Positions 110 to 43,469 of a DNA stretch of 64,000 nt are shown piece by piece. Numbering within the stretch: the first letter of the stretch is position 1; each line of letters starts with the position of its first letter. Location: assembly GCF_006345805.1 (NCBI RefSeq), contig NC_043007.1:32116001-32180000 (forward strand), given 5' to 3'. A program made the position numbers and the translations under genes. The notes beneath the pieces are model-generated. The model was not told the DNA's origin, did no database searches, and saw only the letters and a list, made by a program, of their open reading frames with translations. The DNA comes from Octopus sinensis. Taxonomy: Eukaryota.

Positions 110-290
110 GATATCCTTAGCTGAGAGTGTACCTGAAAACTTGACCTATCCTGCAGGTTCACCATCACACCTGACTACCTATGATGGCATCATGTCCCTG
201 ATTGGAAATGCTAAGCATACAATTGAAATAGCCTCTTTTTACTGGTCACTGCAAGCAAAAGATGTATACAATTCCTCGTCATCTTGGCAA
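110..290 (+). CDS. PLD3: PLD3-like paralog A, first coding exon inside the window (equivalent to exon 2 of paralog B)
   Basis: tttctAG acceptor and GTAAG donor; translates ISLAESVPENLTYPAGSPSHLTTYDGIMSLIGNAKHTIEIASFYWSLQ..., the PLD3/4 N-terminal luminal segment; 181 nt, same as the paralog B exon. Confidence 0.93.
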
Positions 291-609
291 GTAAGGGTTC
301 ATATTTCTACCTCTGGTTAATTTGCTTTTTATGTTTATTATCCTGAAAAATTTATTCAACACCATCTTGCATGTATATATTATCATCTATAAAAATAATA
401 ATAATAATGGTATTTTTTTTAAGCTTATAGCGATCACCATGGAAATGATTAAGGAAAATAGTCGAATAATGGGACATATAAGCCCTCAGGAGAAAAAAAG
501 TAGTCTTTCCAGTACATGTGGGACTTGAACCCACATCCCTTTGTTAATGCAACAAAGCTATTCACAAAAATAATAATGTACATTTGATTTCAATTTTTTG
601 GCACAAAAA

Positions 610-842
610 GGTGGCAAGCTGGCAGAAATGTTAGCACGCCAGGTGAAATGCTGAGCGGTATTTCATCTGCCGTTATGTTCTGAGTTCAAATTCCACCAAG
701 GTCGACTTTGCCTTTCATCCTTTCGGGGTTGATAAATTAAGTACCAGTTACGCACTGGGGTCGTTATAATCGACTTAATCCGTTTGTCTGTCCTTGTTTG
801 TCCCCTCTGTGTTTAGCCCCTTGTGGGCAGTAAAGAAATAAG
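610..842 (+). mobile_element. tRNA-derived SINE family B (representative; other copies at ~2530-2705, 16570-16770, 31135-31540, 32905-33150, 37825-38050, 39300-39490, 54040-54262)
   Basis: gcaagctggcagaa..gttagcacgcc head, GAGTTCAAATTCC box B, shared gtcgactttgcctttcatcc core. Confidence 0.82.
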
Positions 843-865
843 AATGAAAATATAATGGATATGTA

Positions 866-1026
866 GAAAGCTTCTTCCCCTACTGGCGATAAAGGGTCTC
901 TCACTCAGAGTGAAAGGTAGATTGTACGACGCATGTGTGGGAACTGCCATGCTTCATGGCAGTGAAACATGGGCCGTGAATACGGAGGACATGCGTAGGC
1001 GCGAAAGAAATGAAGCTAGCATGATT
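866..1026 (+). mobile_element. RTE LINE RT C-terminal fragment
   Basis: RKLLPLLAIKGLSLRVKGRLYDACVGTAMLHGSETWAV, homologous to the 22287-22970 element. Confidence 0.8.
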
Positions 1027-1240
1027 CCTTTTGTTATATATTTGTTTCCCTGATTTTTAAGTGCCATTTCTCCACGATAGAACGGTCAGTTTGGGAAATG
1101 TCAATTTTGACATTTGCGTAGTCTTGGAATTACATAAATCTATTTATTTCTCTACATTTCTAGGATTATAACTTCAACATTTTTAGCTGTGTGTTTATAT
1201 TTTATTTTTTTAGTTGTATATAACTTTTCTTTTACTTTAG

Positions 1241-1364
1241 GGAGAGAACATCTTTAAAAAACTCATTGATGCTGGAAAGAATAGGAAAATTACAATAAAA
1301 ATTGTTCAGAATAAACCGAACCCACGATTTCCTAATACTGATACAAAAATCCTCAGCAAAGAAG
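1241..1364 (+). CDS. PLD3: PLD3-like paralog A exon
   Basis: tttactttAG / GTAAC; GENIFKKLIDAGKNRKITIKIVQNKPNPRFPNTDTKILSKE; 124 nt, phases fit the neighbouring exons. Confidence 0.92.
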
Positions 1365-2984
1365 GTAACTTTATCATAAATGTTTCATTCTAGTGTAAAA
1401 TTTTCTTCAATACTTTTCTCTTCTATGCCAGTCTTGAACCCTCAATGGCTTCCTTCAGCCAGGAACGAACAATATATATGTGCAGGGGCCATGGAAAAAG
1501 CATCCATGCTAGGGTCACATAAAAATCACCTGTACTGGTGCCACATTAAAAGCACTAGGACAGTACCATGTAAAAAGCACCTGGGGCCAGTGTCACATAA
1601 AAATCACCCATGCCAGTGCTATGTAAAAGGTACCCATGCTGGCACCACATAAAAAGCACCTGGGCTGGTGCCACATAAAAAGTACCCAGTACACTCCGTA
1701 AAGTGGTTGGCATAAAGAAGCGCATACAACCATAGAAACTATGCCAAAACAGACACTGCAGCCTGGTGCAGCTCTCTTGCTGGTCAACCCCTGTCAAACT
1801 GTCCAACCCATGTCAGTATAGAAGACAGACATTAAATGATGATGATGTGTGACTGTGAGAAGTACGGAATGACAGTCAGAGCATGTGTTTCCTATATTGT
1901 GGTTTGGTCTGCTTTTAAATTTTGTGAGTTGTCCTTATTTGGATGATGGACTTTGATAGAGATAGCAACACCAATGTACATTCAGAAGTTGATGACAAAG
2001 ACCATTTAATGATATTCAATGTTAAAGTTTTCTTGTTTATTTCAAGCCCTGGAATTTATAAGGCTGGTTGTTTTGTTTTTATGGTGTATAATCAACTGAG
2101 ATCATAACATTACCTTTGAATGGGGCACAAGTCCATTGCAGGGTTCAAGGCTAATAATTTTGACGGAAGAGGACAAATCAAATGCAGCAACTGGTACTTT
2201 ATTTTATCAACCCCAAAAAGGATGAAACACAAAGTCAACCTCAAAAGCCAGTAGAAACGCCATCAAGCATTTTGTCCTGTAGTGACCCCTGGCGGTCAAG
2301 CAGGAAAGCAAAAGGGAAAAGGGATCTAATGAGAGTAATCTCCCTCGACCTTCTTGAAAATTCTTGGATATTCTAGAAGCTTTCAATTAACTTCTGGATG
2401 ACGTGGAAGTCAAGGTCTTCCAGTTCTTCCTTCATATAAAGCGAACGCAATTCTAATTTCGTGCTCCTTTCGCCTGTCAGTTCCTAGGTGTACACATTGA
2501 GCCACGCTACTCGGACACCTCCACACAAACAGATTAAGTCGATTATATCAACCTCAGTGCGTAACTGGTAGTTATTTAATCGACCCCAAAAGGATGAAAG
2601 GCAAAGTCAACCTCGGCAGAATTTGAACTCAGAATGTAACGGCAGACGAAATACCACTCGGGATTTCACCCAGCGTGCTAACGTTTCTGCCAGCTTGCCA
2701 CCTTTGCGGCAACAGAGAACATTATCATAAAGCTGTAGACTGATCAGAAAGTAGAGAAATATGCAGTGACAGAGATGGAGGTCAGAGATACGTAAGGCTG
2801 GCTAAAGGGAATGAGGTGACAATGGTGGAATGGGGTCGTTGATAGGGGTATGAGAGAGTATTGAGAATGTTAGCAGATATGAGAATTATTAAAGATGAAG
2901 TGTGGCAGGTCTAGAATGTAACTCAGAGGAGGAGGAAAGCTAACTGCAGGCAAAGAAAGGGGGTGATTGGTACGAAATTAAGGA

Positions 2985-3306
2985 GGAGCACTCCGTCGGT
3001 TACGACGATGAGGGTCCCAGCTGATATGATCAACGGAACAGCTTGCTCGTGAAATTAACGTGCAAGTGACTGAGCAATCCAAAGATATGCGTACCCCTAA
3101 CGTAGTTCTCAGGGAGATTCAGCGTGACACACAGTGTGACAAGCTGGTCCTTTGAAATACAGGTACAACTCATTTTTGCCAGGTGAGTGGACTGGAGCAA
3201 CAGGAAATAAAGTGTTTTGCTCAAGGACACAACGCATCGCCGGGAATCGAACTCACGACCTTACAATCGTCAGTCGAATGCCCTAACCACTAAGCCACGC
3301 ACCTTC
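2985..3306 (-). mobile_element. tRNA-derived SINE family D (related copy at ~8195-8520 plus strand)
   Basis: Minus strand gtggcttagtggttagggcattcgac...gagttcgattccc head, followed by a gtgtccttgagcaa.acactt core. Confidence 0.75.
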
Positions 3307-3445
3307 ACGGTACGAAATGTATAGGAAGGGATGATAATGAGAATGATGGGTGGTTGTGCATAGGAAGTAGTTCCAAGAAGAAGTTGGGGGTTAACTGGTG
3401 CCACAAAAGGCGGATGAAGTATGTACCGATTCTGCTCTTTACTGA

Positions 3446-3959
3446 TTAACCCTTTAGCATTTAAACCAGCCATATCCGGCCAAAAGTATTCTGCCTGTTT
3501 TATGTTCAAACTGGCCACATCTGGTCTCTCACACCAGCCCTACAATATCGTTTTAAAAATGAACAGCTTCCTCATCAAAATCTCATAGCACCAAGATAAT
3601 GCCTGATTAGTTCAAGGCAATGTGTTTTTTGTTTGTTCCTTCTCGAGCCATACCTGGCTCATAAGGGCCGGTTTCCCGGTTTCTTTGGCATATATGTTCC
3701 CCACCTGGATGTGACGCCGGTCCGTCGCAGGGGAGCTGCAAGATGCAAGAGGAAAGAGTGAGAGAAAGTTGTGGTGAAAGAGTCAGCAGAAGTTGACTAT
3801 TACCTTCTGCCAGAGCCGTGTGGAACTTAGGTGTTTCGCTCATAAAAACACACATCGCCCGGTCTGAGATTCGAACCCACGATCCCTTGTCTGTGAGTCC
3901 GTTGCTCTTACCACTAGGCCATGTGCCTCCACAAGGCAATGTGGATAAAAAAGGATTAA
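3446..3959. mobile_element. TTAA-flanked MITE-like element interrupted by a tRNA-derived SINE (3625-3931, minus strand)
   Basis: TTAACCCTTT left end, degenerate right end; 12-bp target-site duplication CAAGGCAATGTG at 3613-3624 and 3932-3943. Confidence 0.7.
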
Positions 3960-4080
3960 TTTTGGCAGAATAATGCAAACACTAAATGATTAAGGAAACA
4001 GTAGGAATAATTAATTTGGAAATGATATGATTTTAATTGCTTTTTTTTTTCTACTTTCTCTCTTCTTTTTCTTTCTTTAG

Positions 4081-4214
4081 CTTCTGCAATTGTTCGGAAT
4101 TTAGATGTGCCAAAACTTATGCACGCTGGAATTTTGCACACCAAGATGTGGCTTGTAGACAGAAAGCATTTTTATGTTGGAAGTAATAACCTTGACTGGC
4201 GTTCATTCACTCAA
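4081..4214 (+). CDS. PLD3: PLD3-like paralog A exon with first HKD motif
   Basis: Long polypyrimidine tract + AG, GTAAG donor; ...AGILHTKMWLVDRKHFYVGSNNLDWRSFTQ (HxKxxxxD-x6-GSxN). Confidence 0.96.
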
Positions 4215-5854
4215 GTAAGAATTTTTTCTTTTTCCAACTTGTGTGTTAGGTTCAGATGTGGCTGTGTGATAAGAAGTTTGCTTCCCACCCAGTTGGTTTC
4301 AGGTTCAGTCCCACCATGGGTGCAGTCATGGCTGTTTGGTAAGAAGCTTACTTCCCAATCACATGTTTCCGGGTTCAGTCCCACTATGTGGCACCATAGG
4401 CAAGTGTCTTCTACTATAGCCTCGGGCCGACCGAAGCCTTGTGAATGGATTTGGTAGATGGAAACTGAAAGAAGCCCGTCATCTTGTGTAAGTTTCTTCT
4501 ACTGAAGGTGACCAAAGCCTTGTGAGTAGATTTAGTAGACGGAAACTGGAAGAAGCCCTTGTATATAAGGAGGTTTGTGTTACTGTCTCCTTGCCTTGAC
4601 ATCATGTGATAGTTGTGAGTGTTGCTGTCATCATCATCATCATCATCATCATTTAACGCCCGTTCTCCATGCTAGCATGGGTTGGACAGTTCGACCGGGG
4701 TCTGGGAAGCCATAGAGGCTGCACCAGGCTCCAGTCTGATCTGGCAGTTTTTCTACAGCTTGATGCCCTTCCTAACACCAACCACTCCATGAGTGTAGAG
4801 GGTACTTTTTACGTGCCAGGGGAGGCTGGCAAACGGCCACAATTGGTTGGTGCTTTTACATGTCACCGACACGGACGCCAGTCAGGCGGCGCTGGCATCT
4901 GCCACGTTCGGACGGTGCTTTTTACGTGTCACCAGCACAGGTGTCTTAACTACAATTTCCATTTGATTTTTATTTTGATGTTGGTGTTGACGTACTTGAC
5001 TCAATAAGTCTCCTCAAGAACAGCAGGTCAGATATCCTTCAGTTCCAATCTTCCATGAACACCTGTCAGGTAATGGCAAAATATTACATTACTAGGAAAA
5101 CAAATGAGGGTTGGTGACAGGGAGGGAATCCAACCATAGAAAAATCATCTCAACAAATTCTATCTGACCCATGCCATCATGGAAAAGTCAATGTCAAAGC
5201 GATAATGAATGATGATGATGATATTAATGGTTTACATATTATTGGGTAATGGTTTACATATTATTGGGTTGGTGCAACCATGGACATGAAGCAATGACAA
5301 TATGAAAATATGACTTACAAATGACTTTTTAATGAAAATTAATTAAACATATAGGTGCAACAATGGCTGTTTGGTAAGAAGCTTACTTCCCAATCACATG
5401 TTTCTGGGTTCAGTCCCACTATGTGGTACCATGGACAAGTGTCTTCTCCTATAGCCTCAGGCCAATCGAAGCCTTGTGAGTGGATTTGGTAGACGGAAAC
5501 TGAAAGAAGCCTGTCGTATGTGTATGCATGTGTGTGCATCCCTATTTATCCCCCACCCCACCCCACCATTGCTTGACAACTGGCATCGGTGTGTTTACGT
5601 CCCCATAACTTAGAAGTTTGACAAGAGACTGATAGAATAAGTCATGGGGTCGATTTGTTCAGCTAAAGGCAGTGCCCCAGCATGGCCACAGTCAAATGAC
5701 TGAAACACTTAAAAGAATATTATGAGATATGAAGAATCCTGCCAGTAAAAAATATTTTGAAAAATAATATAACAAGACAATGAAAAAATTATTCACTTTT
5801 TGTATATTATAAGTTTTTAAAAAATGACATTGTATTTTATTTGTTTATTTTCAG

Positions 5855-6052
5855 ATAAAAGAAATGGGTGCCATAGTCACCAAATGTAGTTCTCTTGCAC
5901 AAGACATGGGGAAGCTGTTTGATGTCTACTGGTATTTGAGTAAAACTGAGAAACTGCCCAGTGTATGGCCAAACTCTTACAGTACTCACTTCAATAAAAC
6001 CAACCCTCTGAATGTGAATTTCAATGGAACCAATTATAATACATATTTGTCA
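5855..6052 (+). CDS. PLD3: PLD3-like paralog A exon
   Basis: ttttcAG / GTAAGT; IKEMGAIVTKCSSLAQDMGKLFDVYWYL...NYNTYLS; 198 nt. Confidence 0.94.
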
Positions 6053-6879
6053 GTAAGTTTCTATTGCCAAAGGTTATTTCATACCAAAAACACTAAGATA
6101 CCAAAAACACTTATGTGTCAAAGTTGTTAAGTTTATAGAGAAATAAGTTATACATTCACCCTTGGCTTCTCGTAAGTTACTCTCTTGGACAAAACACATC
6201 ACTTTACTTGTTTCTATCTACTTTCAGGAAAACAAACAACTCTTTGCTCTCCTTTACTTGTTTCAGTCATTTGACTGTGGCCATGCTGGAGCACCACCTT
6301 TAGTCGAGCAAATCGTCCCCAGGACTTATTCTTTGTAAGCCTAGTACTTATTCTATCGGTCTCTTTTGCCGAACCGCTAAGTTACGGGGATGTAAACACA
6401 CCAGCATCGGTTGTCAAGCGATGTTGAGGGGACAAACACAGACACACAAACATATACACACACACATACATATATATATATATGACGGGTTTCTTTCAGT
6501 TTCCGTCTACCAAATCCACTCACAAGGCTTTGGTCCGCCCGAGGCTATAGTAGAAGACACTTGCCCAAGGTGCCATGCAGTGGGACCGAACCTGGAACCA
6601 TGTGGTTCGTAAGCAAGCTACTTACCACACAGCCACTCCTACGCCTATTCTATTCTAGGAATTAAGTTAAAAATTTGGTAAATTTTGATATTTTAACCCA
6701 CATGATTTTCACTAAGAAACAAGAAAAAAAACTCAGATTTTTTGCATGGAATCAAGTAACCTGACCTCCTAATATGTCGCAAACCCCTATTTATGTTCAC
6801 AAAAAAGGGGTGGGTGTGAAACCGCCCCATCCTGGAATCATTGGAATTTTTTGTATTCACCCCACCCACCTATCTACTA

Positions 6880-7180
6880 GGCACATGGCCTAGTGGTTAG
6901 AGCAGCGGACTTGCGGTCGAGGGATCACGGGTTTGAATCTCAGACCGGGCGATGTGTGTGTGTTTATGAGTGAAACACCTAAGCTCCACGCAGCTCCAGC
7001 AAAAGGTAATGGTGAACTTCTGCTGACTATTTCGCCACAACTTTCTCTCACTCTTTCCTCCTGCATCTAGCAGCTCACCTGCGACGGACCGGTGTCCCGT
7101 CCAGGTAGGGAACCTATACACCAAGGAAACCAGAAACCGGCCCTATGAGCCAGGCGTGGCTCGAGAAGGAACACACAAAA
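6880..7180 (+). mobile_element. tRNA-derived SINE family C (also 36829-37145 plus strand, 3625-3931 minus strand)
   Basis: tggcctagtggttagagcagcggact...gggtttgaatctc tRNA-like head and shared body. Confidence 0.8.
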
Positions 7181-7296
7181 CCCCTTTTTGTAGCCATAAA
7201 ACTCTTTCCTCCGGAAGTATTTTTCAAAATTTTTTATGATCTCAGAAAATATATTATTTCTTAAATATATGAATTGAAACCCATTTTTTCTTCCAG

Positions 7297-7436
7297 AGTT
7301 CGCCTCCACCTTTCTGTGCAAATGGACGAACAGGTGACATCGATGCAATTCTGGACGTTATCCATTCTGCTAAGAAGTTTATCCACATTGCTGTTATGGA
7401 TTATGCTCCTGCTCTAATCTACACTTATCCTAAAAA
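7297..7436 (+). CDS. PLD3: PLD3-like paralog A exon
   Basis: ttccAG / GTAAGT; SSPPPFCANGRTGDIDAILDVIHSAKKFIHIAVMDYAPALIYTYPK; 140 nt. Confidence 0.94.
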
Positions 7437-7489
7437 GTAAGTTGCTGTTAATGTTATCACTATTTTAGTTTCTTTCACTTTTGTAAAGA

Positions 7490-8010
7490 GAATCTGCATC
7501 AAATTTTGCCAAAAGCTTGGTGATCCCTGCTCAGGGGCCCACACAAAGTTTTCATCATTCTCAACACTATCAAGTTCTTGTGCAACTGAAACTCCGAGTG
7601 TCCATTTGGTCAGCTGAAAGCAGTTTTGGTACAAACTTGGCAGACAGGCATCTCATACCCAAATCTTCAGTGATTATCGATTGCACTGAACCATAACTAA
7701 TCTGCACATCCCATGATAACTCATGGGTGGTGACTTAATGATTTCCCCTCACAGCTACATGCATATCTGTGATGTTTTTCACAGTTCTGCTAATTGCAGG
7801 CCTCCTAAAACGTTCGTTACTATCAACATATTTTCGGCCATCTTAGAAATATCTGAACCACTCATACACTTGTGTGCAGCTCATACACTCCTCCCCATAC
7901 TCTTTCTGCAACTTTGTGTAGGTCTCTGAACAAGTATCGCCATGACAAATTTCTCTGTCATGGTCAGTCAATGCAACGATCACACGCTACACACCTTCCT
8001 TCCAAGCACT
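7490..8010 (-). mobile_element. Decayed mariner transposase N-terminal (HTH) fragment
   Basis: Minus strand ETYTKLQKEYGEECMSCTQVYEWF...ISYGSVQSIITEDLGMRCLSAKFVPKLLS with stops; a short inverted ICIKFCQKLG piece at the left edge. Confidence 0.78.
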
Positions 8011-8520
8011 GCTGTGAACGGTAGAAGTGAACTAGAACATTAAAACTTAGTCTGAATGCACAGCAGAGTTCAAGCTCAATCTGTGCCAAGTGGCTTCAAT
8101 CAGCAGGCTTTAACTTCGTTACTATGGCAACAGTCCAGATACTTATTGATCAGACCTTGTAATATATGTAATATGTTTGTTTGTATATGACTCAGAGGTT
8201 AGAGCATTGGGCTCACAATTATGAGGTAGTGAGTTCAATACCCAGGCTGGGGTGTGTGTTGTGTTCTTCAGCAAGACACTTTATTTCACGTTACTCCAGT
8301 TCACTCAGCTGTAGAAATAAATTGTGATGTCTCTGGTGCCAAGCTGTGTCGGCCCCTTTGCCTTTCCCTTGGATAACATGGGTGGCATGGAGAGAGGAGG
8401 TTGGTATGCAAGTGCGACAGCTGGTCATCCATAAACAACCTTGTCCAGACTTGTGCCTCAGAAGAGAACTTTCTAGATGTAATCCCATGGTCATTCATGA
8501 CCAAAGGGGGTCTTTACCCT

Positions 8521-8555
<35 letters not shown>

Positions 8556-8711
8556 TCAGGGGTGGCTGTGTGATAAATAGCTTGCTTACCAACCACATGA
8601 TTCTGGGTTCTGTCCCACTGCATGGCACCTTGGGCAAGTGTCTTCAGCATTGGGCTGACCAAAGCCTTGTTAGTGGATTTAGTACACGGAAATTGAAAGA
8701 AGCCCGTTGTG

Positions 8712-8754
<43 letters not shown>

Positions 8755-9735
8755 CTGTGTCGTCCCCCAACATCGCTTGACAACCGATGCTAGTGTGTTT
8801 ACACCCCCGTCACTTAGCGATTCAGCAAGAGAGACTGATAGAATAAGTAAGTACTAGGCTTACAAAGAATAAGTCCTGGGGTCGATTTGCTCGATTAAGG
8901 GTGATGCTCCAGCATGGCCACAGTCAAATGACTGAAACGAGTAAAAGAGTGTATATATTGACACACACGTATAGTCTTTAAGTTAAGAAGTCCACTTCGC
9001 ATCCATTTTGTTTTGGGTTCAGTGTTATCCCTCAGCATCTTGGCAAGTGTCTTCTGCTAGAGCCCTAAGAACTGACCTACAGATGGTGATGTTTATTGAG
9101 GAAATTGTCTGCTAGCTTTGTACTTTCAAAGATGAGTGGAATAAAAAAAATCACGTAACCCATACTATGATGGAAATCTAATATATAAAATCCATTCTGT
9201 CTGTGTGTGTGTCTTCTAGGATCTCGGGCATCCTCCATCCGATTGCGCTCAAATTTGATATGTAGATACCGACGATATCAGGGCATGTATAAGTCTTGAA
9301 AAAATTACAAAAATCGATTCCAGGTGAGAATGTGATCAATAAAGCCAAATAAAATCGTTTTTCTTTTGAATAGGAAAAAAGTCTATCTTTATTTCTTCTT
9401 TTGCTGGTGTCTCAAATTTAGGTTAAATCAGTGTTTCTCAAAGGGGAAGCCTATGGGACGGTCGAACAAGTTGTTTTGAGAAAATTTGGTTAAAATGTTT
9501 GACAACTCAGCACCATCCATTGGACGGTGGTGGTGGGTTGCTCATACTGATATAAAACAAAGGAATGAATGTATGTGTGTGGAGTTAGTAACTTAGCAAC
9601 ATTCTTTTAACTGACATATTTTTATCCATTTATGTGAAAATTATTTGAACTCATCCTAATACAACAAAATAGTTTATTCAATACCAGTGCGATACAAAAT
9701 ATAATTTAAAAACTTTTTGTTCCTTTCATTACCAG

Positions 9736-9898
9736 ATTCTGGCCAGTTATTGATAATGCCCTCAGAACTGTGTCATTTAACAAAGGTGTTGAAGTCTTCA
9801 TGATGTGTAGCTTGTGGAAACACACAAAGCCGAGTGTGTACAATTACCTGACTTCTTTGGCTGCTCTGAATGGTACTGGACGAGCTAGAATTCAAGTG
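9736..9898 (+). CDS. PLD3: PLD3-like paralog A exon
   Basis: accAG / GTATGT; FWPVIDNALRTVSFNKGVEVFMMCSLWKHTKPSVYNYLTSLAALNGTGRARIQV; 163 nt. Confidence 0.94.
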
Positions 9899-10916
9899 GT
9901 ATGTACTTTGTGTTTTCAATGTATTTTGATTTTAGGTCGACTTTGCCTTTCATCCTTTCAGGATCAATAAATTAAGTACCAGTTGTGTACTGGGTCGATC
10001 TCATTGACTGCCCCCGCCCAACTCTCCAAAAATTTCAGGCCCTGTGCTTAGAGTAGGAAAGAATATTTAAATGGCTGTGAATTTCAGAATGTTATTTTCC
10101 TTTCAATAAGAAAGAGTCCTTTTTTCCTTGTATCAATGTTTTTATATTCAAATTCTTCGTCAGCATCTGCTGAGGTTGATTTTGCCTTTCATCCTTTTGG
10201 GATTGATAAAATAAATACCAGTTGAGCACTGAGGTCAATGTAATTGACTTATCCCCTAATTGCTGGCCTTGTGCCAAAATTTGAAACCAATATCTCAACT
10301 CCTAAGTGTTGTGAAGCCCTTTACGGTACCAATTTCTTCCCTCGCACCTCTGAACTTTGGAATCCCCTTCCAGTCTTTTCCTCTTCGATATGACCGCCAG
10401 TCTTTTAAGTCTGATGCACATGGCCACCTAATGACTTCTCTCTAGCGTCCATTTTATTCTAATGGCCCTCACGTTTTCAGTGGTCTAAGGACCTTGTAAT
10501 GAGTGAATGCTTTAAAATAAAAATTTTTTAAAATTAAAATAAAAAACAAAAACTGTGGAGTTTATCGTTTTCATATCAGTTCTCACAACATTTTCCCCCC
10601 ACTTTGGGAAAATATTACATTGCTTGAAAACAGGTGAGGGTTGATGACAGGAAGAGCATCCAGCCATATTAAAATCTATCTCAACAAATCTCATCTGACC
10701 CGTGTGAGTATGGAAAAGCGGATATTAAAATGATGATGATGACTTCTCTTCGGCCTTTTGATGTAAATTAACATTTTGTCTCCAAAAGGTTAAACTCATT
10801 TCATATTTTCAATGTTCACCAAATTTTCTGCCCTCATCATGCATGCCGCCAACAAACATCACGATTCTTTCACATAATGTTATCTACAATAGTTGCTATT
10901 TCTTTTGCAATTTCAG

Positions 10917-11019
10917 AAATTCTTCCACGTTCCAAGTTTTACTCCTGAACAGGATAAGATTCCTTTTGCACGTGTTAACCATGACAAATATATGGTCACG
11001 GATACTGATGCCTATATTG
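10917..11019 (+). CDS. PLD3: PLD3-like paralog A exon with second HKD motif
   Basis: tttcAG / GTAAG; KFFHVPSFTPEQDKIPFARVNHDKYMVTDTDAYI; 103 nt. Confidence 0.95.
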
Positions 11020-11680
11020 GTAAGATAGTTTTCATTTGTTTTTTGGGGTTTTTTTCAAGAAGTTAAAACAATTATGAACTCTGAAATTCAGTTGTTACCT
11101 GTATAGCAGAAATTTGAATTCATTTCGAGCAGGTCGTTGCCAGTATCACTGGACTGGCTCTTGTGCAGGTAGCACGTAAAAAGCACCATTTGAGCGTGGC
11201 CGTTGCCAGTACTGCCTTACTGGCCCTCATGCCGGTGGCACATAAAAAGCATCCACTACACTCTCGGAGTGGTTGGCATTAGGAAGGGCATCCAGCTGTA
11301 GAAACTCTGCCAGATCAAGATTGAAGCCTGGTGTAGCCATCTGGTTCACCAGTCCTCAGTCAAATCGTCCAACCCATGCTAGCATGGAAAGCAGACATTA
11401 AACGATGATGATGATGATGATGATGATTTCAAATGCAGAGAAAGTTTTTTTCTTTTTCTTATGACTATTAATCTACCATTTGTCAATTCCCAGTCACTTA
11501 TGCTATCTGCTTCTATCAAATTCCTGGTAACCACTTTATTAATCACACCCCAGAACATCAATGATTCGAACCCATTTTATCCTTTTGTAGTATTCTATTT
11601 ATTTCACTCTTCTTTAATTCCTAAATGCAGATTTTGACAAACTGGAAAGAATTGTATTATATTTCTTTTACTTGTTGCAG

Positions 11681-11841
11681 GAACGTCCAACTGGAGCGGT
11701 GATTACTTTACATCCACAGGAGGTTTGGGAATAATTGTCAGACCAACAAATACAAAAAAACCAAATTTGCGCCAGCAACTTGAAGATGTCTTTCAAAGAG
11801 ACTGGAACTCTAAATATTCACATCCCGTAAAAAGAAGATAA
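11681..11841 (+). CDS. PLD3: PLD3-like paralog A last coding exon
   Basis: ttgcAG acceptor; GTSNWSGDYFTSTGGLGIIV...LEDVFQRDWNSKYSHPVKRR, stop TAA at 11839-11841. Confidence 0.95.
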
Positions 11842-23405: not shown

Positions 23406-23494
23406 ATGACCTTAGTTATTTTTTTTGCAAGCCTTTCTGTGATTATCTTAACTTTCCTTCTGGAAAATCGTCAAGCCTTTGTCGACGACTGTTG
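23406..23494 (+). CDS. PLD3: PLD3-like paralog B coding exon 1 (signal peptide / signal anchor)
   Basis: MTLVIFFASLSVIILTFLLENRQAFVDDC(W); phase-2 donor GTAAGT joins in frame to exon 2, giving DDCWISLVETVP (compare PLD3 DPC..VLVESIP). Confidence 0.85.
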
Positions 23495-24189: not shown

Positions 24190-24370
24190 GATATCCTTAG
24201 TTGAGACTGTCCCTAAAGATATGACCTATGCCCCAGGTTCACCATCACACCTGTCTACCTATGACGGTCTTTTGTCTTTGATTGAAGAAGCCAAGGACAC
24301 AATTGAGATAGCCTCTTTTCATTGGATACTGGATGCCCAAGATGTACATTCACTGCCATCAGAGTGGGAA
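24190..24370 (+). CDS. PLD3: PLD3-like paralog B exon 2
   Basis: tttcAG / GTAAGT; ISLVETVPKDMTYAPGSPSHLSTYDGLLSLIEEAKDTIEIASFHWILDAQDVHSLPSEWE; 181 nt. Confidence 0.94.
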
Positions 24371-25192: not shown

Positions 25193-25316
25193 GATACAAA
25201 CCTTTTTCAACATCTTTTGTCAGCTGGTAAAAACAGGAACGTAGAAATCAAATTACTTGAAAATAAACCAAATTCTGAAATGCAAAGTCCAGATACAGAA
25301 ATATTAATTGAAGACG
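25193..25316 (+). CDS. PLD3: PLD3-like paralog B exon 3
   Basis: ttctatAG / GTGAGA; DTNLFQHLLSAGKNRNVEIKLLENKPNSEMQSPDTEILIED; 124 nt. Confidence 0.91.
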
Positions 25317-27689: not shown

Positions 27690-27823
27690 CTCATGCTTCA
27701 GTTCGACACATTGACATGAAAAAACTGTTGGGAGGTGGAATTATGCACACAAAGATATGGATTATTGACAGAAGGCATTTCTATATTGGCAGTTCTAATC
27801 TTAATTGGCGCTCTCTCGCTCAA
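27690..27823 (+). CDS. PLD3: PLD3-like paralog B exon 4 with first HKD motif
   Basis: Polypyrimidine tract + cAG / GTAAG; ...GGGIMHTKIWIIDRRHFYIGSSNLNWRSLAQ; 134 nt. Confidence 0.95.
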
Positions 27824-29450: not shown

Positions 29451-29648
29451 GTGAAAGATCTCGGGGTTATAATTTCCAACTGCAAATCACTCGCAGAAGA
29501 CATGGGCAAAATATTCGATACCTTTTGGTATCTGACAAAAGTTGATGCAATTCCTAAACCATGGCCAGACGTGTACAACACCACAACCAATAAAGAAAAA
29601 CCTTTGAACATCAATCTCAATGACAGCAATAGCAACGTGTACTTATCG
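29451..29648 (+). CDS. PLD3: PLD3-like paralog B exon 5
   Basis: gttttAG / GTAAGT; VKDLGVIISNCKSLAEDMGKIFDTFWYL...SNVYLS; 198 nt. Confidence 0.94.
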
Positions 29649-33465: not shown

Positions 33466-33605
33466 ATTTCCCCACCTGCTTTCTGTGCAAATGGCCGAAC
33501 AGGTGACATCGATGCAATTCTGGACGTTATCAATTCTGCTAAGAAGTTTATCCACATTGCCGTTATGGATTATGCTCCTGCTTTGGAATTTCAACATCCT
33601 CCAGT
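33466..33605 (+). CDS. PLD3: PLD3-like paralog B exon 6
   Basis: cccAG / GTAAGT; ISPPAFCANGRTGDIDAILDVINSAKKFIHIAVMDYAPALEFQHPP; 140 nt. Confidence 0.94.
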
Positions 33606-34237: not shown

Positions 34238-34267
<30 letters not shown>

Positions 34268-34278
<11 letters not shown>

Positions 34279-34589: not shown

Positions 34590-34673
34590 GTCATATTTTG
34601 TGAAATTTGATTTAGTATTTCTAAATTGAATTTTTCCCTGTAAGTTTGGAATAATATTCCATCAAATTATTAC

Positions 34674-34711
<38 letters not shown>

Positions 34712-35893
34712 CGGACATTAAATGATGATATATATATATTTATATTTATATCTGTGTGTGTCTGTGTTTGTCCTGCTCTACCACTTGACAACTGGTGTTG
34801 GTGTGTTTACATCCCCATGACCTAGAAATTCAGAGAAAAGAGACCAATAGAAAAGAACCTTGCCTGACAGAAAAAATAAGCCCTGGGGGGTTGATTCATT
34901 CAACTAAAAATACTTCAGTGCAGTGCCCCAGCATGGCCGCAGTCTAATGACTGAAACAAGTAAAAGGTAAAAGATATTTCCAAAGCAAATTACTCTCTGT
35001 CTGTCAATTTTTGGGAAAAATTGAGAATTTCAATTTAGTAATACAACCATTTTTATACCTATTTTATCAACCCTGAGAAGATAAAAGGCAAAGTCAACCT
35101 TGGTGGAATTTGAACTCAGACCTTAAAGAGTTGGGAAAAAAATGAAATGTCACAAAACATTTTGTACAGTATGTCAACAATTCTGCCTTTTTGCCATTTT
35201 TTCTTTTATTCTTTTACTTGATTCAGTCATTTGACTGTGGCCATGCTGGAGCACTACCTTTAGTCGAGCAAATCGACCCCTGGACTTATTCTTTATAAGC
35301 CTAGTACTTATTCTATCAGTCTCTCTTGCTGAACCGCTAAGTGACAGGAACGTAAACACACCACCATCAGTTGTCAAGCGATGTTGCAAGGGACAAACAC
35401 AGACACACAAACACACACACACATACACACATACACGATGGGCTTCTTTCAGTTTCCGTCTACCTGGTTGGCCTGAGGCTATAGCAGAAGACACTTGCCC
35501 AAGGTACCATGCAGTGGGACTGAACTTGGAACCATGTGGTTGGTAAGCAAGCTACTTACCACAGAGCCACTCCTGCGCCTATATTTTATAAAATAATAAT
35601 ATTAATAATAATAATCCTTTCTACTAAAGGCATCAGGCTTGAAATTTGGCGGGAAGGGACTAGTCGATTACATTGATCTCAGTATTTCACTGGTATTTAT
35701 TTTATACTGAAAGGATGAAAGGCATAGTCAACCTCAGCGGGATTTAAACTCAGGACGTAGCGACAAGCGAAATACCACTAAACATTTCATCCAACACACT
35801 AACAATTCTGGCAGCTTTGCTCCCTATTATAATAATTTGATAATAATTTGTAAATTGTTTTATACAAATTGTTTTATAATGTATACAATAATT

Positions 35894-35938
<45 letters not shown>

Positions 35939-36177
35939 TATGTTTGACTTTTGCTTTATATTTGTACAAGTTGGCTCCAAGTCTCACCCAGAGACTTCAA
36001 GAGACAACAGGTTGGAAGTTCACGTTGTTGTTATGCCTAGTGTGCCATATATTTGGTTGGTTTTTTTTGTGTTGTACTAGTGGATATCTTAAAAAAAAAA
36101 ATGTTTGTTTTAAACCTTGAGATTACATAGAAAGTATTTTGCGTAGGATATGAGCAGTTCCCATGAGCACTATCTCA

Positions 36178-36220
<43 letters not shown>

Positions 36221-36407
36221 ATAAAGATTAATATAAACATAAAACCATGGAGTTTACAGTACATGTGGCCCCTCAAGGCATGTGGTGAATAGATTATGAA
36301 TTAGATATAAATGTTGATAAATATTATGATTTATACAGATTTTTTTCTTTATTCCAATGATAATATTATTGATAATAATTCTGTGAAATTAATAATTGTA
36401 TTTATAG

Positions 36408-36570
36408 GTTTTGGCCAATTATTGACAGAGCTCTTAGAAATGTATCATTCACCAAAGGCATTGAAGTTTTTCTACTTGGTAGCCATTGGAAGCACAACAA
36501 AGCCAGTATGTTCAACTTCCTTAAATCTTTGGCTAACTTAAACAGCGCCTCAAAGGCTAAAATGCAAGTG
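36408..36570 (+). CDS. PLD3: PLD3-like paralog B exon 7
   Basis: tttatAG / GTAAGC; FWPIIDRALRNVSFTKGIEVFLLGSHWKHNKASMFNFLKSLANLNSASKAKMQV; 163 nt. Confidence 0.94.
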
Positions 36571-37229
36571 GTAAGCGATTCATTTTCTGAAAAACAAGAA
36601 TTCTTTCTCTAACTCAAATTCCTAATTAATGTCAACACACGAAATATTTTGATACATAAAATAATGTTACTCTGTGTGTGTGTGTGTGTGTGTATGTGTG
36701 TTAAACAATAAATTAATGAGTCTTTTTAACATCAGTCAAATGAAAATATTGTCTGGAATTGGATGAAATAACGATAGGAGATCTGGACAAGACTAGAAAC
36801 AACACCTGTCTATTGTAATCTCCCGATTGGAGGTGCAATGGCCCAGTGGTTAGGGTAGTGGACTTGCGGTCGGAGGATCACAGTTTCGATTCCAAGACCA
36901 GGCGTTGTGTGTGTTTATTGCGTGAAAACACCTAAAGTTCCACGAGGCTCCAGCAGGGGGTGGCAGCGACCCCTGTTGTACTCTTTCGCCCCAACTTTCT
37001 CTCACTCTTTCTTCCTGTTTGTTGTGTAACGCTGCGATGGACTGGCATCCCGTCCAGCTGGGGGGAACACATACGCCATAGAAACCGGGAAACTGGGCCC
37101 ATGAGCCTGGCTAGGCTTGAAAAGGGCACATAAATAAATAAATAAAATCTCCCAGTTAGGGTCTGGGATATTTTGGCAATTTTTAGTTGGCGTTGCTGAC
37201 TCAATACTGCCTTAAATAATGTTTTAATA

Positions 37230-37356
<127 letters not shown>

Positions 37357-38306
37357 GTATTAAGTACTGTTAATGGTAGTGACACGAAATAAGAAGCTGC
37401 CTGGTATATACTGCAAACGGTTGATTTTAGAAACTCTGCCAAAGTTGATACTGGGGCCCAATGCAGTCCTTTGGCCAGCATGGAACATATACATTAAATG
37501 TCCTTCTTCATTTAACTGATGTTTTTAGTTATTTAAACATCTCACCAATTTTCATGTTATAAAAACTTAGATGAGAGAAATATTAAAATATAAATAAGTT
37601 AATTTCATAAATCTTGCAGGAATATTTAGCAATAAAGCTCGGATCACTATATCCAAGGCAAAAAAAACAAAAAACCAATCCAAGAATATGATTACAATTT
37701 GCTAGAATATTACCTATGTCATCAAAAAAAATCTGACCACTCAAGACTTTGTGTGGAATCTAACAATTGCATCTTTGGCACACTTTTTTTGAGTAAGACC
37801 ACCAATATATATTCAGCGCATTTTAAGGGTGGCGAGTTGGCAGAAACGTTAGCACGCCGGGTGAAATACGTAGCCGTATTCCGTCTGCCGTTACGTTCTG
37901 AGTTCAAATTCCACCAAGGTCAACTTTGCTTTTCATCCTTTCGGGGTTGATAAATGAAGTACCAGTTACGCACTGGAGTCGATGTAATCAACTTTATTCG
38001 TTTGTCTGTCTTTGTTTGTCCCCTCTATGTTCAGCCCCTTGTGGTTAGTAAAAAACAAATATTCAGCGCATTTTAGCCACTATGGACAGATGGCAGACAG
38101 TAGCACAACCAGCAGCGGACCAGAACACTGTAACAACACAAAAACAATGGACGGTAACAACAGCAATAGACAATGATCAGTTAACATCAAGAAACTCACA
38201 ACAGTGGCTACTGTCATACCTGGTCCTAGAACAATAAGCTTCAAACTATCTCAGTGTTCATTGTTCATTGTAATGACATTTTTTTGTTTATAATAAAAAT
38301 AGATAA

Positions 38307-38673
38307 TCTCTCTATATATAAACGGCAAAATGTCTGTCTGTGTGTGTGTCCTTTATACAAATCTACAATTTTTCAGTTAGAGGGCTCGCACTTTCTATGG
38401 TCATTCAAAACCATCCAAAGGTGGTCGTGCACATCTTTACATTTCCCCAGTCACCCTGCAAAGCCATTAAAAATCAATAGAAGTGTCTTTTTTGTGAATT
38501 TTCTATCCAAAACTCAATCAAAATGCCCGAAACTTGATACGCCATTTGAATGCCAGCTAGCTGTATGTGATTGGTCGGAGATTTGGACAGTACTCGCATG
38601 TATGTGCGCACGCACGCAGCTGTATATGCATGCACTAGCACTATGACCTGGCAACACCAGGTCATAGTGCTAG
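38307..38673 (+). mobile_element. Non-autonomous Helitron-like element
   Basis: A|TC...CTAG|T boundaries, TCTCTCTATATATAAA start, 3' hairpin; related 5' ends near 9177 and 44925. Confidence 0.7.
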
Positions 38674-38749
38674 TCTTTTATTAAAAATCCCAGACAAACT
38701 GCTGTATTCATTATTGTAACATAATTATTACTTTGATTCTAAATTATAG

Positions 38750-38852
38750 AAAATGTTGGAAGTACCATATTTTACCAAGGAGCAAAAAGAGATTCCTTCT
38801 TTGTGTATTAACCATAACAAATTCATGGTCACAGACACTGATGCCTTTATTG
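38750..38852 (+). CDS. PLD3: PLD3-like paralog B exon 8 with second HKD motif
   Basis: attatAG / GTAAG; KMLEVPYFTKEQKEIPSLCINHNKFMVTDTDAFI; 103 nt. Confidence 0.94.
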
Positions 38853-39561
38853 GTAAGATATCTTTTCAAACTTTTATCTTTCAGTTTTGTCTTTTACTTG
38901 TTTCAAACATTGGACTGGGGCACCACCGAGAAGGTTTTAGCTGAGCAAATCAACACACGCCAGATGTCAAGCAGTGGTACTCGACAACAAATGATATAAG
39001 TAAAAGTTTGTATCATTTGCTCCTTATATATGTTTCACCATTGTGACTGGTGAAATGTATGCAGGGAACACATTATATACACTTGTGTTTAGCATAATTT
39101 CTCTCCAATATTTGCTCTGCATATCACAAGCCAGCACGATACAGAAAGCAGACTGGTTTATGGTAATCTACATACAGCCGTAATCTCAACAATAGTTATA
39201 TATCTACATGTATGTATAAATGTGTGTGTATGTGTATGCATGTATATGTATATGTGTATGTGTGTGTATACATATATGTGTATACATATGTATTATCATC
39301 CATCCAAGATGTTGCCGTTACATTCTGAGTTCAAATTCCGCCAAGGTCGACTTTGTCTTTCACCCTTTCGAGGTAGATAAATTAAGTACCAGTTATGCAC
39401 TGGGGTCGATGTAATCGACTTAATCCGTTTGTCTGTCCTTGTTTGTCCCCTCTGTGTTTAGCCCCTTGTGGGTAAGTAAAGAAATAGGTATGTGCTTCAG
39501 CAAACATTCCATTTACTGTTTACATAAAAATAATTAATTATAAATCTTTATCTTGTTTCAG

Positions 39562-39737
39562 GGACATCTAGTTGGAGTGGGGATTACTTTACACCTGCTG
39601 TGGGCCTCGGATTGGTTGTCAGATCAACAAAAGCACAAAAACATAATTTCCACCATCAACTGGAAGCAGTCTTTCAAAGAGACTGGAACTCTAAATATTC
39701 ACATAACCTAGAAGATATTGATCCTACTAAAGTCTAA
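39562..39737 (+). CDS. PLD3: PLD3-like paralog B exon 9 (last)
   Basis: tttcAG acceptor; GTSSWSGDYFTPAVGLGLVV...LEAVFQRDWNSKYSHNLEDIDPTKV, stop TAA at 39735-39737; summed CDS is 1308 nt = 435 aa + stop. Confidence 0.94.
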
Positions 39738-39929
39738 AACAACTTCTAAAATTTTCTTTACGAATTTGAGTTTACTAACCTCTTGTTAACCACTGCTGCC
39801 TGTGCTGTTACTGTGCGTATTTCTGAGGTGGTTTCTTTTTTGTACCAGTGTACGATGGGTGAATCAAACTCTTTGCTTTGTTTTCATGTTATTTTATCTA
39901 TATGGAGAGTAACTGCAGATGGATGAGTA

Positions 39930-39935
39930 AATAAA
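39930..39935 (+). terminator. Candidate polyadenylation signal of paralog B
   Basis: First AATAAA, about 190 nt after the stop. Confidence 0.35.
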
Positions 39936-42215
39936 GTATTGGACAACCAGCTGCAGTAGTTCTCAGCTAGGGTCCGTATGACCCCTTGTGGTCCCTAAGC
40001 CAAATAGCATATTGGGTCCGTGAAAAAGATTTTGCTTCAGTTGTATTTATTGCAAAAAACAGTTAAGTAGTACTTTACATGATTCATCCTACAAAAGGGA
40101 ATGTTTGATAGGGAAAATAGGAATTTTGAAAGAAAGATCTACAAAACTAGATTTTCAAACATCGGAAGGCTTTTGGGGTCCACCAGAATAAAATGGTAAT
40201 CAAAGGTGTCTTGAGATAAAAAAAATAGTTAAGAACCACTGAGCTAAAGGGTTACAAATGCTATACATATGCTCATAGCCAAGACTCTTCACTTTCAGTG
40301 ATCTAATTCTTATGGCTTGTATGTAGGGACCATCAGGTGGACTGGTTAACCACTAGAAGCAACAGCACACAGGTAAATTTGAATCATGCTTCACTAACTT
40401 GCAATTCTGAAAGGGAGGTGGATTTTTTTTGTTTGTTCATTTTTCATTGTTTTTTTGCTGATAAAATTGCTAGCAATATGACCCTATTTGCAATTATAAT
40501 GATAATGAAATTATTGTATGCAGTGCTCAGGTGCACCACAACTTGTCAAAAGTGCGTATAAAGCATATGCAGTAATGTACAAATGTTTGGAAAGTGAGCA
40601 GTGTATGAGTCAGATACATGCTTGAGTGTGTTTGGAGGGGAGAAAAATCAGGTGTAGTATTGGCGAATCTCAGGAAGCATGGAAGTTTTGAAGGATGCAG
40701 TGCTCCGACAACTAACAACTGATGCCGGCAGTTTGTTCCATGCTTCAGCAACTCTTAGCGTGAAAAAATGTTTCCGAAAGTCATGGAAGGAGCTGTGCTG
40801 TTTTCTGACTTTGTAAACATGTCAACATCACTAAAAAAATTAAAACATGTAGCTATACAACATAAATCAGTATACTCTTTCAGTATTTTAGTAAAAGTAT
40901 CTTCATTCTTTTACAAATTTATATATCTTCCAAGCTGTGATGGATCTCATGAACCATTTATATTATTCAGTTATAATGCTGGCTATATTTAGAGATAAAT
41001 TCTTTTATAGAATTATATATTTTATACGCACTGTGATCTATATAAATATCCTCAACCTAATTACCAAATCTCCATTACCCTAATTACTCTGGTGATATAT
41101 AATCTCAGTGAGAAAAACATATGGTTGTAACTTCTTCCTGAAACTGAATGTGATTCAACTGGATTGAAATAACAACCCTCAAGTTATAATCCCATGAGAG
41201 AATTTGCAGGTCTAAGTTGTTAGACCTGCATGTTCCCTCAAGGGATTATAACCACAAAAATTATTTTAAAGCAAGGCTAGAAATTTATTTGTTTGGAGAA
41301 TTAGTATTTCCTGTGTTATGTTAAATAATTATTATATCTAGAGTATATTTAACCCTTTCGTTACCAACCCAGCTGAAACCGGCTCTGGCTCTGAGTACAA
41401 ATGTCTTATTTTCATAAGTTTTGAATTAAAATCTTCCACCATACCTTAGTCACAATTTATGTTCTAACATTAGCTTAATGATAACTAAGTTATTTTACTA
41501 AATTCTTAGTTATATTTAAAATTAATTGAAAGAAACACAGATCATCTCAAAATAAATATGGTAATGAATGGGTTAATGATAATTTAATCAGTTTAATCAG
41601 TAAAGCTAACTCAAATATTACAACATAGTTGCCCTTATGAAAATGAGATTAAATTTCACTAAAATTAACATAGATATAAACCAGATGCTCAGGTGCAGCA
41701 CAGAATTTTGTCAGTGAACAGGTCGCGGTCTCAAAGCGTCGAAAATATTTTGACAAATTTAATTTAATTGTTGAAGTGAATCTAACAGTTTTTGTGTGTT
41801 TCTTAAATGGCTTATAAACACCTTCCACGCTGCAATAGTTTTCGTTCCAGCACATGATCTCAGATCAGGTCACTTGCTATGCAAGTACATCTCCATAAAA
41901 CTTATATATAGTATTTTGTATATTGGGGGTGATGAATTTTTGTCTAAACATGTAGCTGGTTATGAGTACACATCATTAAAGACCCGAAAAGGCTAAAATG
42001 CACCAAGCATTTTTGCTGGTCGCTGCTGAGGTGCTCTTTTGTTTTCCTATGATATTGTTTTTAACATACATCTGTTATAAAGATTGCAATTATTGTGTCT
42101 ACAGTTATTGAAAATCTATGTGATATCTCTATATGTGTATTTTATATATAAATTTTATTATTATTACATAGAATTTTAAATTTTGGCTTCGAATTATATT
42201 AAAAAAACATATACA

Positions 42216-42254
<39 letters not shown>

Positions 42255-43469
42255 TCATCATCATTTAACGTCCGCTTTCCATGCTAGCATGGGTTATATA
42301 TATATATGTATTCTTTTATTTGTTTCAGTCATTTGGCTATGGCCATGCTGAAGCACTGCCTTTAGTTGAACAAATCAGCCCCAGGACTTATTTTTTGTAA
42401 GCCTAGTACTTATTTTATCAGTCTCTTTTTGCCGACTTGCTAAGTTACGGTGATATAAGCACACCAGTATCGGTTGTCAAGCAATGGTGGGGAGACACAC
42501 ACACACACATACATGACGGGCTTTTTTCAGTTTCCATCTACCAAATCCACTCACAAGGCTTTGGTTGGCCTGAGGCTATAGTAGAAGACACTTTGCCCAG
42601 GGTGCCGTGCAGTAGAACTGAACCCAGAACCATGTGGTTGGTAAGTAAGCTACTTACCACACAGCCACTCCTTATATATATATAAGCTCTACTTCGTGTA
42701 TTGAGTGTTATTTGTAATTCCAAACCTATACATTGGGGTGGGGCTAATCATGTAGTATTAACATGCTTTGCAAAGGTGTATGACCTGGTGGTTAGAGTGT
42801 TGTACTCACAATTGCAACAGCATGGTTTCAATTCCTGGACCATGCAATACATTGTGTTAGTGAGCAAAACAATAAGACAGCAGACTTGCAGAACTGTTAG
42901 CATGCCAGACAAATTGCTTAGCAGAATTTGATTTGCCCTCTGAGTTAAAATGCTACTGAGGTCAACTTTGCCTTTCATCCTTTCGAGGTTGATAAATTAA
43001 GTACCAGTTGAGTGCTGGGGTCAATGTATTTGACTTACACATCCACCCCATCACCCCTCAAAATTGCTTTACATGTGCCATGATTTGAAACCATTATTAA
43101 AGGAATATATTTTAGTAGCGAAGATCAAATGCCGTCAAGGTCAGCTTTGCCTTTTATCCTTTTGGAGTTGATAAAATAAGTACCAGTTGAGTGCTGGGGG
43201 TCAATGTAATTGACTTATACAAAGCAAAACTTAAAATGCAACTAGACCACCCTAACACAAACCAATTACCACAACTGTTTCATGGTTTCATTGCTCAAGA
43301 AATCTGGTCAAGAATCTGTGTAAATTGTCACCATTTTATATTTTTAATTTAGTAGGGTCAATTGGGCAATGTCTGTGAGAAAAACAGCACCATGATGCAA
43401 TTCACTCTACCAGAAATTTGGAAATGACATGCTGTGCTGCTTGGCATTCGTGCCAGAAACTCCAATACG

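Follow-up and report, generated by a model that had tools for sequence, protein, structure and literature searches.

By removing single-stranded nucleic acids from endolysosomes, PLD3 and PLD4 determine the threshold for TLR7/TLR9-type sensing; no function is known for PLD5, their 'inactive' relative. The window analysed here is a stretch of 64,000 nucleotides from contig NC_043007.1 of Octopus sinensis, and its base composition, its intron-rich genes and its best protein matches identify it as octopus nuclear DNA. On its + strand lie two PLD3-like genes in head-to-tail order: paralog A (110-11841), which keeps the canonical active site, and paralog B (23406-39737), in which several residues in and next to the catalytic cavity have been replaced. 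For B, we establish directly below the gene structure, the substitutions and how rare they are, when the duplication took place, the selection acting on the gene and the fold of its product, and published mutants of human PLD3 indicate that B has probably lost its canonical exonuclease activity, fully or in large part.

In PLD3, the second histidine is the nucleophile and is positioned or activated by a glutamate, while Asn218 and Asn432, together with both lysines, hold the scissile phosphate and the 3-phosphohistidine phosphate (PMC10690185, PMC12749308). Tyr126 and the backbone of Tyr411 bind the 5'-OH of the substrate in a pocket whose narrowness keeps out a 5'-phosphate; Tyr411 also stacks on the first base, and Thr441 touches the second (PMC12749308). 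Asp220 makes a water-mediated contact to the first nucleotide, and the human mutant N432A has no exonuclease activity at all, yet is localised to lysosomes normally (PMC10783504). The E229A mutant is likewise inactive, and Y411A shows reduced activity (PMC12749308). PLD3 and PLD4 additionally make the lysosomal lipid bis(monoacylglycero)phosphate, or BMP (PMC12055030).

Paralog B consists of nine coding exons and encodes a protein of 435 amino acids that is identical to RefSeq XP_029642904.1 (5'-3' exonuclease PLD3-like). Its exons have the same lengths as those of A (181, 124, 134, 198, 140, 163 and 103 nucleotides), except for the first and last coding exons; every intron of both genes is bounded by GT and AG, both reading frames are open, and the two paralogs are 60% identical. 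Exon 1 of B contains an ATG with an in-frame stop upstream and is followed by a GTAAGT donor, and exon 1 of A lies upstream of the window. B spans 16.3 kb in O. sinensis versus 8.4 kb in O. bimaculoides. Paralog A is 99% identical to an O. vulgaris protein (P0004).

The residues of B were matched to those of human PLD3 by alignment to the PLD3 sequences in the PDB (E ~1e-103; 41-42% identity), and substitutions are given hereafter in human numbering. His74, Asn170 and Asp179 of B correspond to Tyr126, Asp220 and Glu229; Ser360, Leu361, Cys362 and Ile363 correspond to Tyr411, Ala412, Arg413 and Val414; and Ser381 and Ala390 correspond to Asn432 and Thr441. A preliminary description of this DNA had read GTSSWSGDY in B (AGT at 39570-39572) where A has GTSNWSGDY (AAC at 11689-11691), IPSLCINH where A has IPFARVNH, and VKDLG (GAT at 29457-29459), NLNWRS and SFHW elsewhere in B, with both His/Lys/Asp triads retained. 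All of these readings agree with the sequence, in which exon 9 of A begins at 11681, and the role assigned there to the asparagine, that of a hydrogen bond to the scissile or covalent phosphate, agrees with what has been published for PLD3 (PMC10783504, PMC12749308, PMC10690185). The interval of 38798-39575, to which that description was attached, is mostly the last intron of B and is coding only at its two ends.

Both motifs of the HxKxxxxD/E type are present in B (H151-T-K153-x4-D158 and H365-N-K367-x4-D372), the second of them in exon 8, where the codon of Ser360 is TCT at 38798-38800. In human numbering, Octopus B keeps H201, K203, D208, N218, F335, W367, H369, H416, K418 and Y437, so that the contacts to nucleotides 2 and 3 are all retained (W316, H318, Y386 and F284 of B for human W367, H369, Y437 and F335). 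Of the two phosphate-binding asparagines, the first is kept (N168) and the second is Ser381; the place of Glu229 is taken by Asp179 in VKDLG; and the aromatic 5'-nucleotide pocket holds His74 and Ser360. SFHW, NLNWRS and IPSLC fall on contacts to the 5'-nucleotide, and VKDLG falls on the glutamate that supports the nucleophilic histidine. Thus, the further substitutions in B are not scattered, as they occupy positions in the 5'-nucleotide pocket and the nucleophile support that have published roles.

As a side observation, the D220N change in Octopus B corresponds to GAT becoming AAT (the Asn170 codon in exon 4, 27690-27823). Adenosine-to-inosine (A-to-I) editing, known from coleoids, could in principle turn this AAU back into GAU, by which the ancestral Asp would be regained in the RNA. 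For Ser381, editing is unable to undo what is seen in the DNA, because AGU cannot become an Asn codon.

The rarity of these residues was evaluated in 254 homologs, comprising 97 from a word-indexed search, cluster members, and 144 representatives (<=50% identity) from an exhaustive HMMER search. In the column of Asn432, 216 homologs carry Asn, 16 carry Asp (mostly PLD5-like proteins), four carry Ser, Gly, Thr and Ala occur once each, and 15 have a gap. Two of the four with Ser are O. bimaculoides B itself, and the other two (P0160 and P0165) are without a catalytic His or Lys; hence, within this set, Ser at this position combined with two intact His/Lys pairs is found only in Octopus B. The alignment check proposed in the preliminary description therefore shows GTSS to be near-unique among the homologs that keep both pairs, and the idea that GTSS is common in active homologs is ruled out by the column counts. 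Position 229 is Glu in 243 of the 254 homologs and Asp in five, and position 411 is Phe or Tyr in 213. In the subset of 198 canonical homologs, Glu229 is invariant and Tyr126 is 95% conserved; Asn432 is Asn in all 198 by construction of that set. Two further homologs, P0121 and P0153, keep both His/Lys pairs and have Asp at the Asn432 position, with P0121 also having E229D and Y411R. Judging by their sequences, these may be additional independent cases of the same kind.

The serine is present in three independent assemblies, with AGT in O. sinensis and O. vulgaris, whose genome (L004) holds an intact B reading frame, and the synonymous codon AGC in O. bimaculoides (L001), which likewise reads IPSLCINH. 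An assembly error or a private polymorphism is thereby ruled out. The annotated B protein of O. vulgaris (P0002, CAI9730715.1) runs in the wrong frame from the junction of exons 7 and 8 onwards (L004, OX597824.1, 16502-17489), and given that the O. vulgaris DNA has an intact reading frame over nine exons, this frameshift is an error of the gene model and not a mutation.

Apart from the codon itself, B as a whole might be a dying gene, i.e. an unexpressed pseudogene. The frameshifted annotation in O. vulgaris could be cited for this, as could the fact that the exact B protein is found on one genomic contig only, with no transcript contig in the protein collection, which speaks neither way on transcription. 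However, the O. vulgaris DNA is intact, and the reading frame and every splice site of B are intact in four genomes, those of the three Octopus species and Argonauta hians, despite an Octopus-Argonauta synonymous divergence of more than one per site. The ratio of non-synonymous to synonymous substitution rates (dN/dS) was obtained by the Nei-Gojobori method on 393 shared codons. Between O. sinensis and O. bimaculoides, B has a ratio of 0.27 and A one of 0.24; for Octopus against Argonauta, where dS is saturated, the ratios are 0.22-0.25 (B) and ~0.10 (A). Overall, dN/dS of B ranges from 0.22 to 0.29, far below 1, and its dN is 1.6 times as high as in A. In B, non-synonymous changes fall far short of the synonymous rate (Fisher p = 2e-8), and the synonymous divergence between A and B is itself saturated (dS 0.9-2.0). 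Hence, in line with the preliminary description, B is not decaying, and a pseudogene is ruled out by the intact frames and splice sites together with these ratios. Artefact and pseudogene are both essentially excluded, and the very small probability that we leave to this explanation concerns solely the case that B is not expressed.

The product of B is also predicted to fold correctly. The AlphaFold2 model, for which an alignment of 60 sequences was used, has a mean predicted local distance difference test score (pLDDT) of 92.1 and a predicted template modelling score (pTM) of 0.90, and its N-terminal helix (residues 2-21) is consistent with a signal anchor. In a Foldseek search, the model matched PLD3 of human and mouse, and also PLD4, with template modelling (TM) scores of 0.83-0.94 and root-mean-square deviations of 1.4-2.0 A; against 8q1k, 8v05 and 9vbg, the TM scores are 0.87-0.92, and the bilobal PLD3 fold is thus retained. 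Poxvirus K4 and F13 appear among the PDB matches as well. The Pfam domains of B are PLDc_3, PLDc_2 and PLDc, as in PLD3 and PLD4, and they score as highly as those of A. By its N-terminal hydrophobic segment and by homology, B would be a luminal protein of the endolysosome.

With such a fold, B might simply be an ordinary exonuclease, in which Ser381 and Asp179 do the work of Asn and Glu, making it a second and faster-evolving PLD3 isozyme with, for example, another tissue, pH or sequence preference. This would agree with the retention of the His/Lys pairs and of most contacts to the DNA backbone, with purifying selection of comparable strength on both paralogs within Octopus, and with the RefSeq name. 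Nevertheless, we consider it unlikely. Asn432 and Glu229 are invariant and Tyr126 nearly so in the canonical homologs, N432A and E229A each abolish the activity of the human enzyme (PMC10783504, PMC12749308), five pocket residues have been changed together, and the B protein of Argonauta is clearly without the catalytic Lys203.

The comparison with Argonauta comes from a locus of shared history. The gene order of A, B and then a gene of ~2120 amino acids is common to O. bimaculoides and Argonauta hians. In O. vulgaris and O. bimaculoides, B has an intact reading frame and exons of equal length; in Argonauta hians the frame is intact as well, with in-frame insertions or deletions in exons 6, 7 and 9. 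In a neighbour-joining tree made from 376 ungapped columns, the B genes of the three Octopus species and Argonauta form a clade with 100% bootstrap support, the A genes form another with 97.5%, and octopod A and B are joined with 90.5%; the cuttlefish and squid-like sequences fall outside. The duplication is hence placed in stem octopods. The annotated start of Argonauta B is TTG, with an in-frame ATG two codons upstream (MSLVIFY...; L003, 9995-10083), and therefore the true N-terminus of Argonauta B matches that of Octopus.

All B genes share Y126H, G144D/E, E229D, Y411S, V414I and the loss of R413 and T441. D220N and N432S are found in Octopus only, as Argonauta B keeps Asn432 and Asp220; N432S would thus have arisen after the split from Argonauta and before that between O. 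bimaculoides and O. sinensis. The changes confined to Argonauta, confirmed in its genomic DNA, include K203N, which removes the catalytic lysine, as well as S216T, R222N, W367L and H369Q. Argonauta B (P0007) resembles Octopus B in its syntenic position and in the shared substitutions, and differs from it by two small deletions and a poly-Ser insertion. Conservation in the canonical homologs reaches 90% or more at 66 positions; 10 of these are changed in Octopus B and 18 in Argonauta B, compared with four or five in A and three in the cuttlefish (Sepia). In Tajima tests, the number of changes unique to B is about twice that in A for Octopus and 3.4 times for Argonauta (chi-square 7.5-35). Paralog A has the same exon-intron structure as its tandem neighbour; unlike B, it retains every catalytic and pocket residue (Phe in place of Y411 is the usual alternative), and its rate of evolution is about half that of B.

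With K203, W367 and H369 lost from Argonauta B, the B clade is without a conserved catalytic apparatus. Moreover, the loss of different catalytic residues in two lineages is what is expected once selection no longer maintains catalysis, and this constitutes the strongest argument for a loss of activity. The data on human N432A and E229A would provide the second. The preliminary description had proposed that B is a weakened or dead nuclease or else has a changed substrate, and had taken the retained histidines to favour altered chemistry. The proposal itself is supported in part, by N432A, by the rarity of GTSS and by the likeness to PLD5; the preference for altered chemistry is not, as the K203N, W367L and H369Q changes in Argonauta tilt the balance towards loss of catalysis.

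On these grounds, we hold with about even confidence that B is a selected, correctly folded PLD3 paralog whose 5'-OH exonuclease activity has been lost or strongly reduced, on a path like that of PLD5. The gene would have originated by a tandem duplication, specific to octopods, of the gene for a PLD3-type lysosomal exonuclease that degrades single strands from 5' to 3'. Before Octopus and Argonauta separated, the 5'-nucleotide pocket and the nucleophile support would have been rebuilt (Y126H, E229D, Y411S, R413C/W, V414I and T441A/S), and each lineage would then have lost different catalytic or contact residues (N432S and D220N in Octopus; K203N, R222N, W367L and H369Q in Argonauta). Octopus B would consequently have lost most or all of its efficient link-and-release hydrolysis of 5'-OH single-stranded DNA and RNA, and may have been kept for a non-catalytic or weakly catalytic role, such as the binding of nucleic acids or lipids in the endolysosome. 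In this form, B would be an independent and still incomplete parallel to vertebrate PLD5.

Like vertebrate PLD3 and PLD4 (PDB 8q1k, 8v05, 9vbg and 9vbj), B has an N-terminal hydrophobic anchor and two HxKx4D motifs. Unlike them, it has N432S, E229D, Y126H, D220N, Y411S, R413C, V414I and T441A in or next to the catalytic cavity, it is without the long cytosolic N-terminal tail, and as an octopod-specific duplicate it is an ortholog of neither. Vertebrate PLD5 ('inactive phospholipase D5') is similarly a paralog in the PLD3 family that has kept the fold while its motifs were eroded, an intact gene without the full catalytic set. However, Lys203 and Asn218 are gone from PLD5, often together with the histidines, and its residue at 432 is Asp instead of Ser, whereas both His/Lys pairs are kept in B of the three Octopus species and K203N is confined to the Argonauta ortholog. 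B also groups with octopod A inside the cephalopod clade and not with vertebrate PLD5, so that its origin is independent of PLD5. Since B is without three features of active PLD3 and PLD4 (the second asparagine, Glu229 and the aromatic pocket) and is without those of PLD5 as well, we regard it as an independent, lineage-specific and partly eroded PLD3 paralog within the PLD3/4/5 family, to which its sequence, domains and fold assign it.

The resemblance to PLD5 that the preliminary description had pointed to is a real one: 'inactive PLD5-like' proteins of fish (P0086, P0089, P0096 and others) share Y126H, V414I and the loss of both R413 and Asn432 with octopod B. This convergence fits a loss of catalysis, and it suggests that residues may be lost in a repeatable order when PLD3-type proteins leave the exonuclease function.

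Several points weigh against a loss of activity. Octopus B keeps both histidines, both lysines, N218, W367, H369, Y437 and F335. The human precedent is N432A and not N432S, and the hydroxyl group of Ser could reach the phosphate directly or via water; compared with the Ala substitutions assayed in the human enzyme, Ser and Asp are the milder ones, and E229D is conservative. In cells, TLR9 signalling was still dampened by the human Y411A mutant (PMC12749308). D220N and N432S, having arisen on the same branch, could be a compensating pair. The recent dN/dS of B is essentially no higher than that of A, and of the 43 residues at which B differs between O. sinensis and O. bimaculoides, only one lies in the motif windows (60 of 435 residues), where about six are expected (binomial p = 0.015). 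Given the low dN/dS and the conserved motif windows, B is a maintained gene whose former active-site region is constrained in Octopus, and such conservation is what a site that continues to bind or turn over a ligand would be expected to show.

With His, Lys and Asn218 kept, mild replacements, a conserved site, and D220N and N432S on one branch, a change of specificity is a serious rival. Octopus B could still be a phosphodiesterase or transphosphatidylase that acts on what PLD3 handles poorly, using a His-lined and enlarged 5' pocket (Y126H, Y411S and R413C) and a re-tuned phosphate clamp (N432S with D220N). Candidate substrates are 5'-phosphorylated or blocked ends, dinucleotides, or lipids such as the BMP precursors used by PLD3 and PLD4. 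The confinement of the 5'-OH and exclusion of a 5'-phosphate by Tyr126 and Tyr411 in PLD3 (PMC12749308) is in line with this, as are the slow 5'-phosphatase activity (PMC10690185) and BMP-synthase activity (PMC12055030) of PLD3 and PLD4, the conservation of both HxK pairs, N218 and the nucleotide 2-3 contacts in three Octopus species, and the stronger constraint on the motif regions than on the rest of B. On the other hand, Argonauta B shares the pocket changes and yet has lost Lys203, Trp367 and His369, so any new catalytic activity is not conserved across the B clade; N432A kills human PLD3 (PMC10783504), and no homolog with Ser432 and intact His/Lys is known to be active. We therefore regard a changed substrate or chemistry as a tentative possibility. 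In its more specific form, Octopus B would be catalytically active and have acquired another end specificity: Y126H and Y411S would open the narrow pocket and add positive charge, N432S and D220N would reshape the phosphate clamp, and the enzyme would process 5'-phosphorylated or blocked nucleic acids, or a lipid phosphodiester, that A is unable to use. This form appears quite improbable to us.

If the loss of canonical activity is accepted, B represents a natural experiment, an independent PLD3 paralog half-way to the PLD5 state, that can reveal which residues go first when catalysis is lost or changed: in Octopus, the pocket has been rebuilt with the histidines intact, and in Argonauta, the catalytic lysine is already gone. 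As a case of active-site erosion it is clean and well dated, and A and B form a tractable pair for learning what non-catalytic PLD3-like proteins do. The significance is moderate, as duplication followed by active-site divergence is a common pattern, here in a family of current biomedical interest. A literature search on octopus PLD3 found nothing relevant; the RefSeq name was given by homology only and probably overstates the function of B.

Table 1. Positions in the window of paralog A and of the exons and last intron of paralog B, with the residues that they encode.
Feature	Position	Strand	Content	Basis
Paralog A, canonical copy	110..11841	+	exons 110-290, 1241-1364, 4081-4214, 5855-6052, 7297-7436, 9736-9898, 10917-11019, 11681-11841	
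B exon 1	23406..23494	+	start codon and hydrophobic N-terminal signal/anchor (MTLVIFFASLSVIILTFLL...DDCW)	tblastn with O. vulgaris N-terminus
B exon 2	24190..24370	+	SFHW; His74 aligns to human PLD3 Tyr126 (5'-OH contact)	alignment; Tyr126 role, PMC12749308
B exon 3	25193..25316	+	first codon Asp91, aligns to human PLD3 Gly144	Gly144 is Gly in 198/198 canonical homologs
B exon 4	27690..27823	+	first HKD motif; H151, K153, D158, N168 kept; Asn170 for Asp220	alignment
B exon 5	29451..29648	+	begins VKDLG; Asp179 (GAT 29457-29459) for Glu229	Glu229 role, PMC12749308, PMC10690185
B exon 6	33466..33605	+		
B exon 7	36408..36570	+	Trp316, His318 (human W367, H369) kept	alignment
B exon 8	38750..38852	+	IPSLCINHNKFMVTD; Ser360/Leu361/Cys362/Ile363 for Y411/A412/R413/V414; H365, K367, D372 of second HKD kept	alignment
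B last intron	38853..39561	+	(TG/TA)n microsatellite and SINE-like interspersed repeat at ~39300-39480	
B exon 9	39562..39737	+	GTSSWSGDY; Ser381 (AGT 39570-39572) for Asn432; Ala390 for Thr441; stop codon 39735-39737	

The interspersed repeat, which resembles a short interspersed nuclear element (SINE), occurs in more than 20 copies on both strands, in introns and intergenic DNA, along with (TG/TA)n microsatellites. Places at which it is found include 39180-39480 in the last intron of B, 600-840, 16580-16760, 31140-31540, 32920-33150, 37830-38060, 54040-54260 and 56290-56830. A tRNA scan of the window found none.

Downstream of B, positions 39744-53579 are collinear with O. bimaculoides at 81-92% identity, and on account of this collinearity the next gene is placed with its start near 48477 (open reading frame MASNEPRED...). 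This gene encodes 2120 amino acids in O. bimaculoides, and its Argonauta counterpart of 2139 amino acids has a weak PHD match. Finally, an open frame of 191 amino acids on the minus strand (62270-62845) contains an imperfect tandem repeat of ~8-10 amino acids (CAELPDTCAG...).

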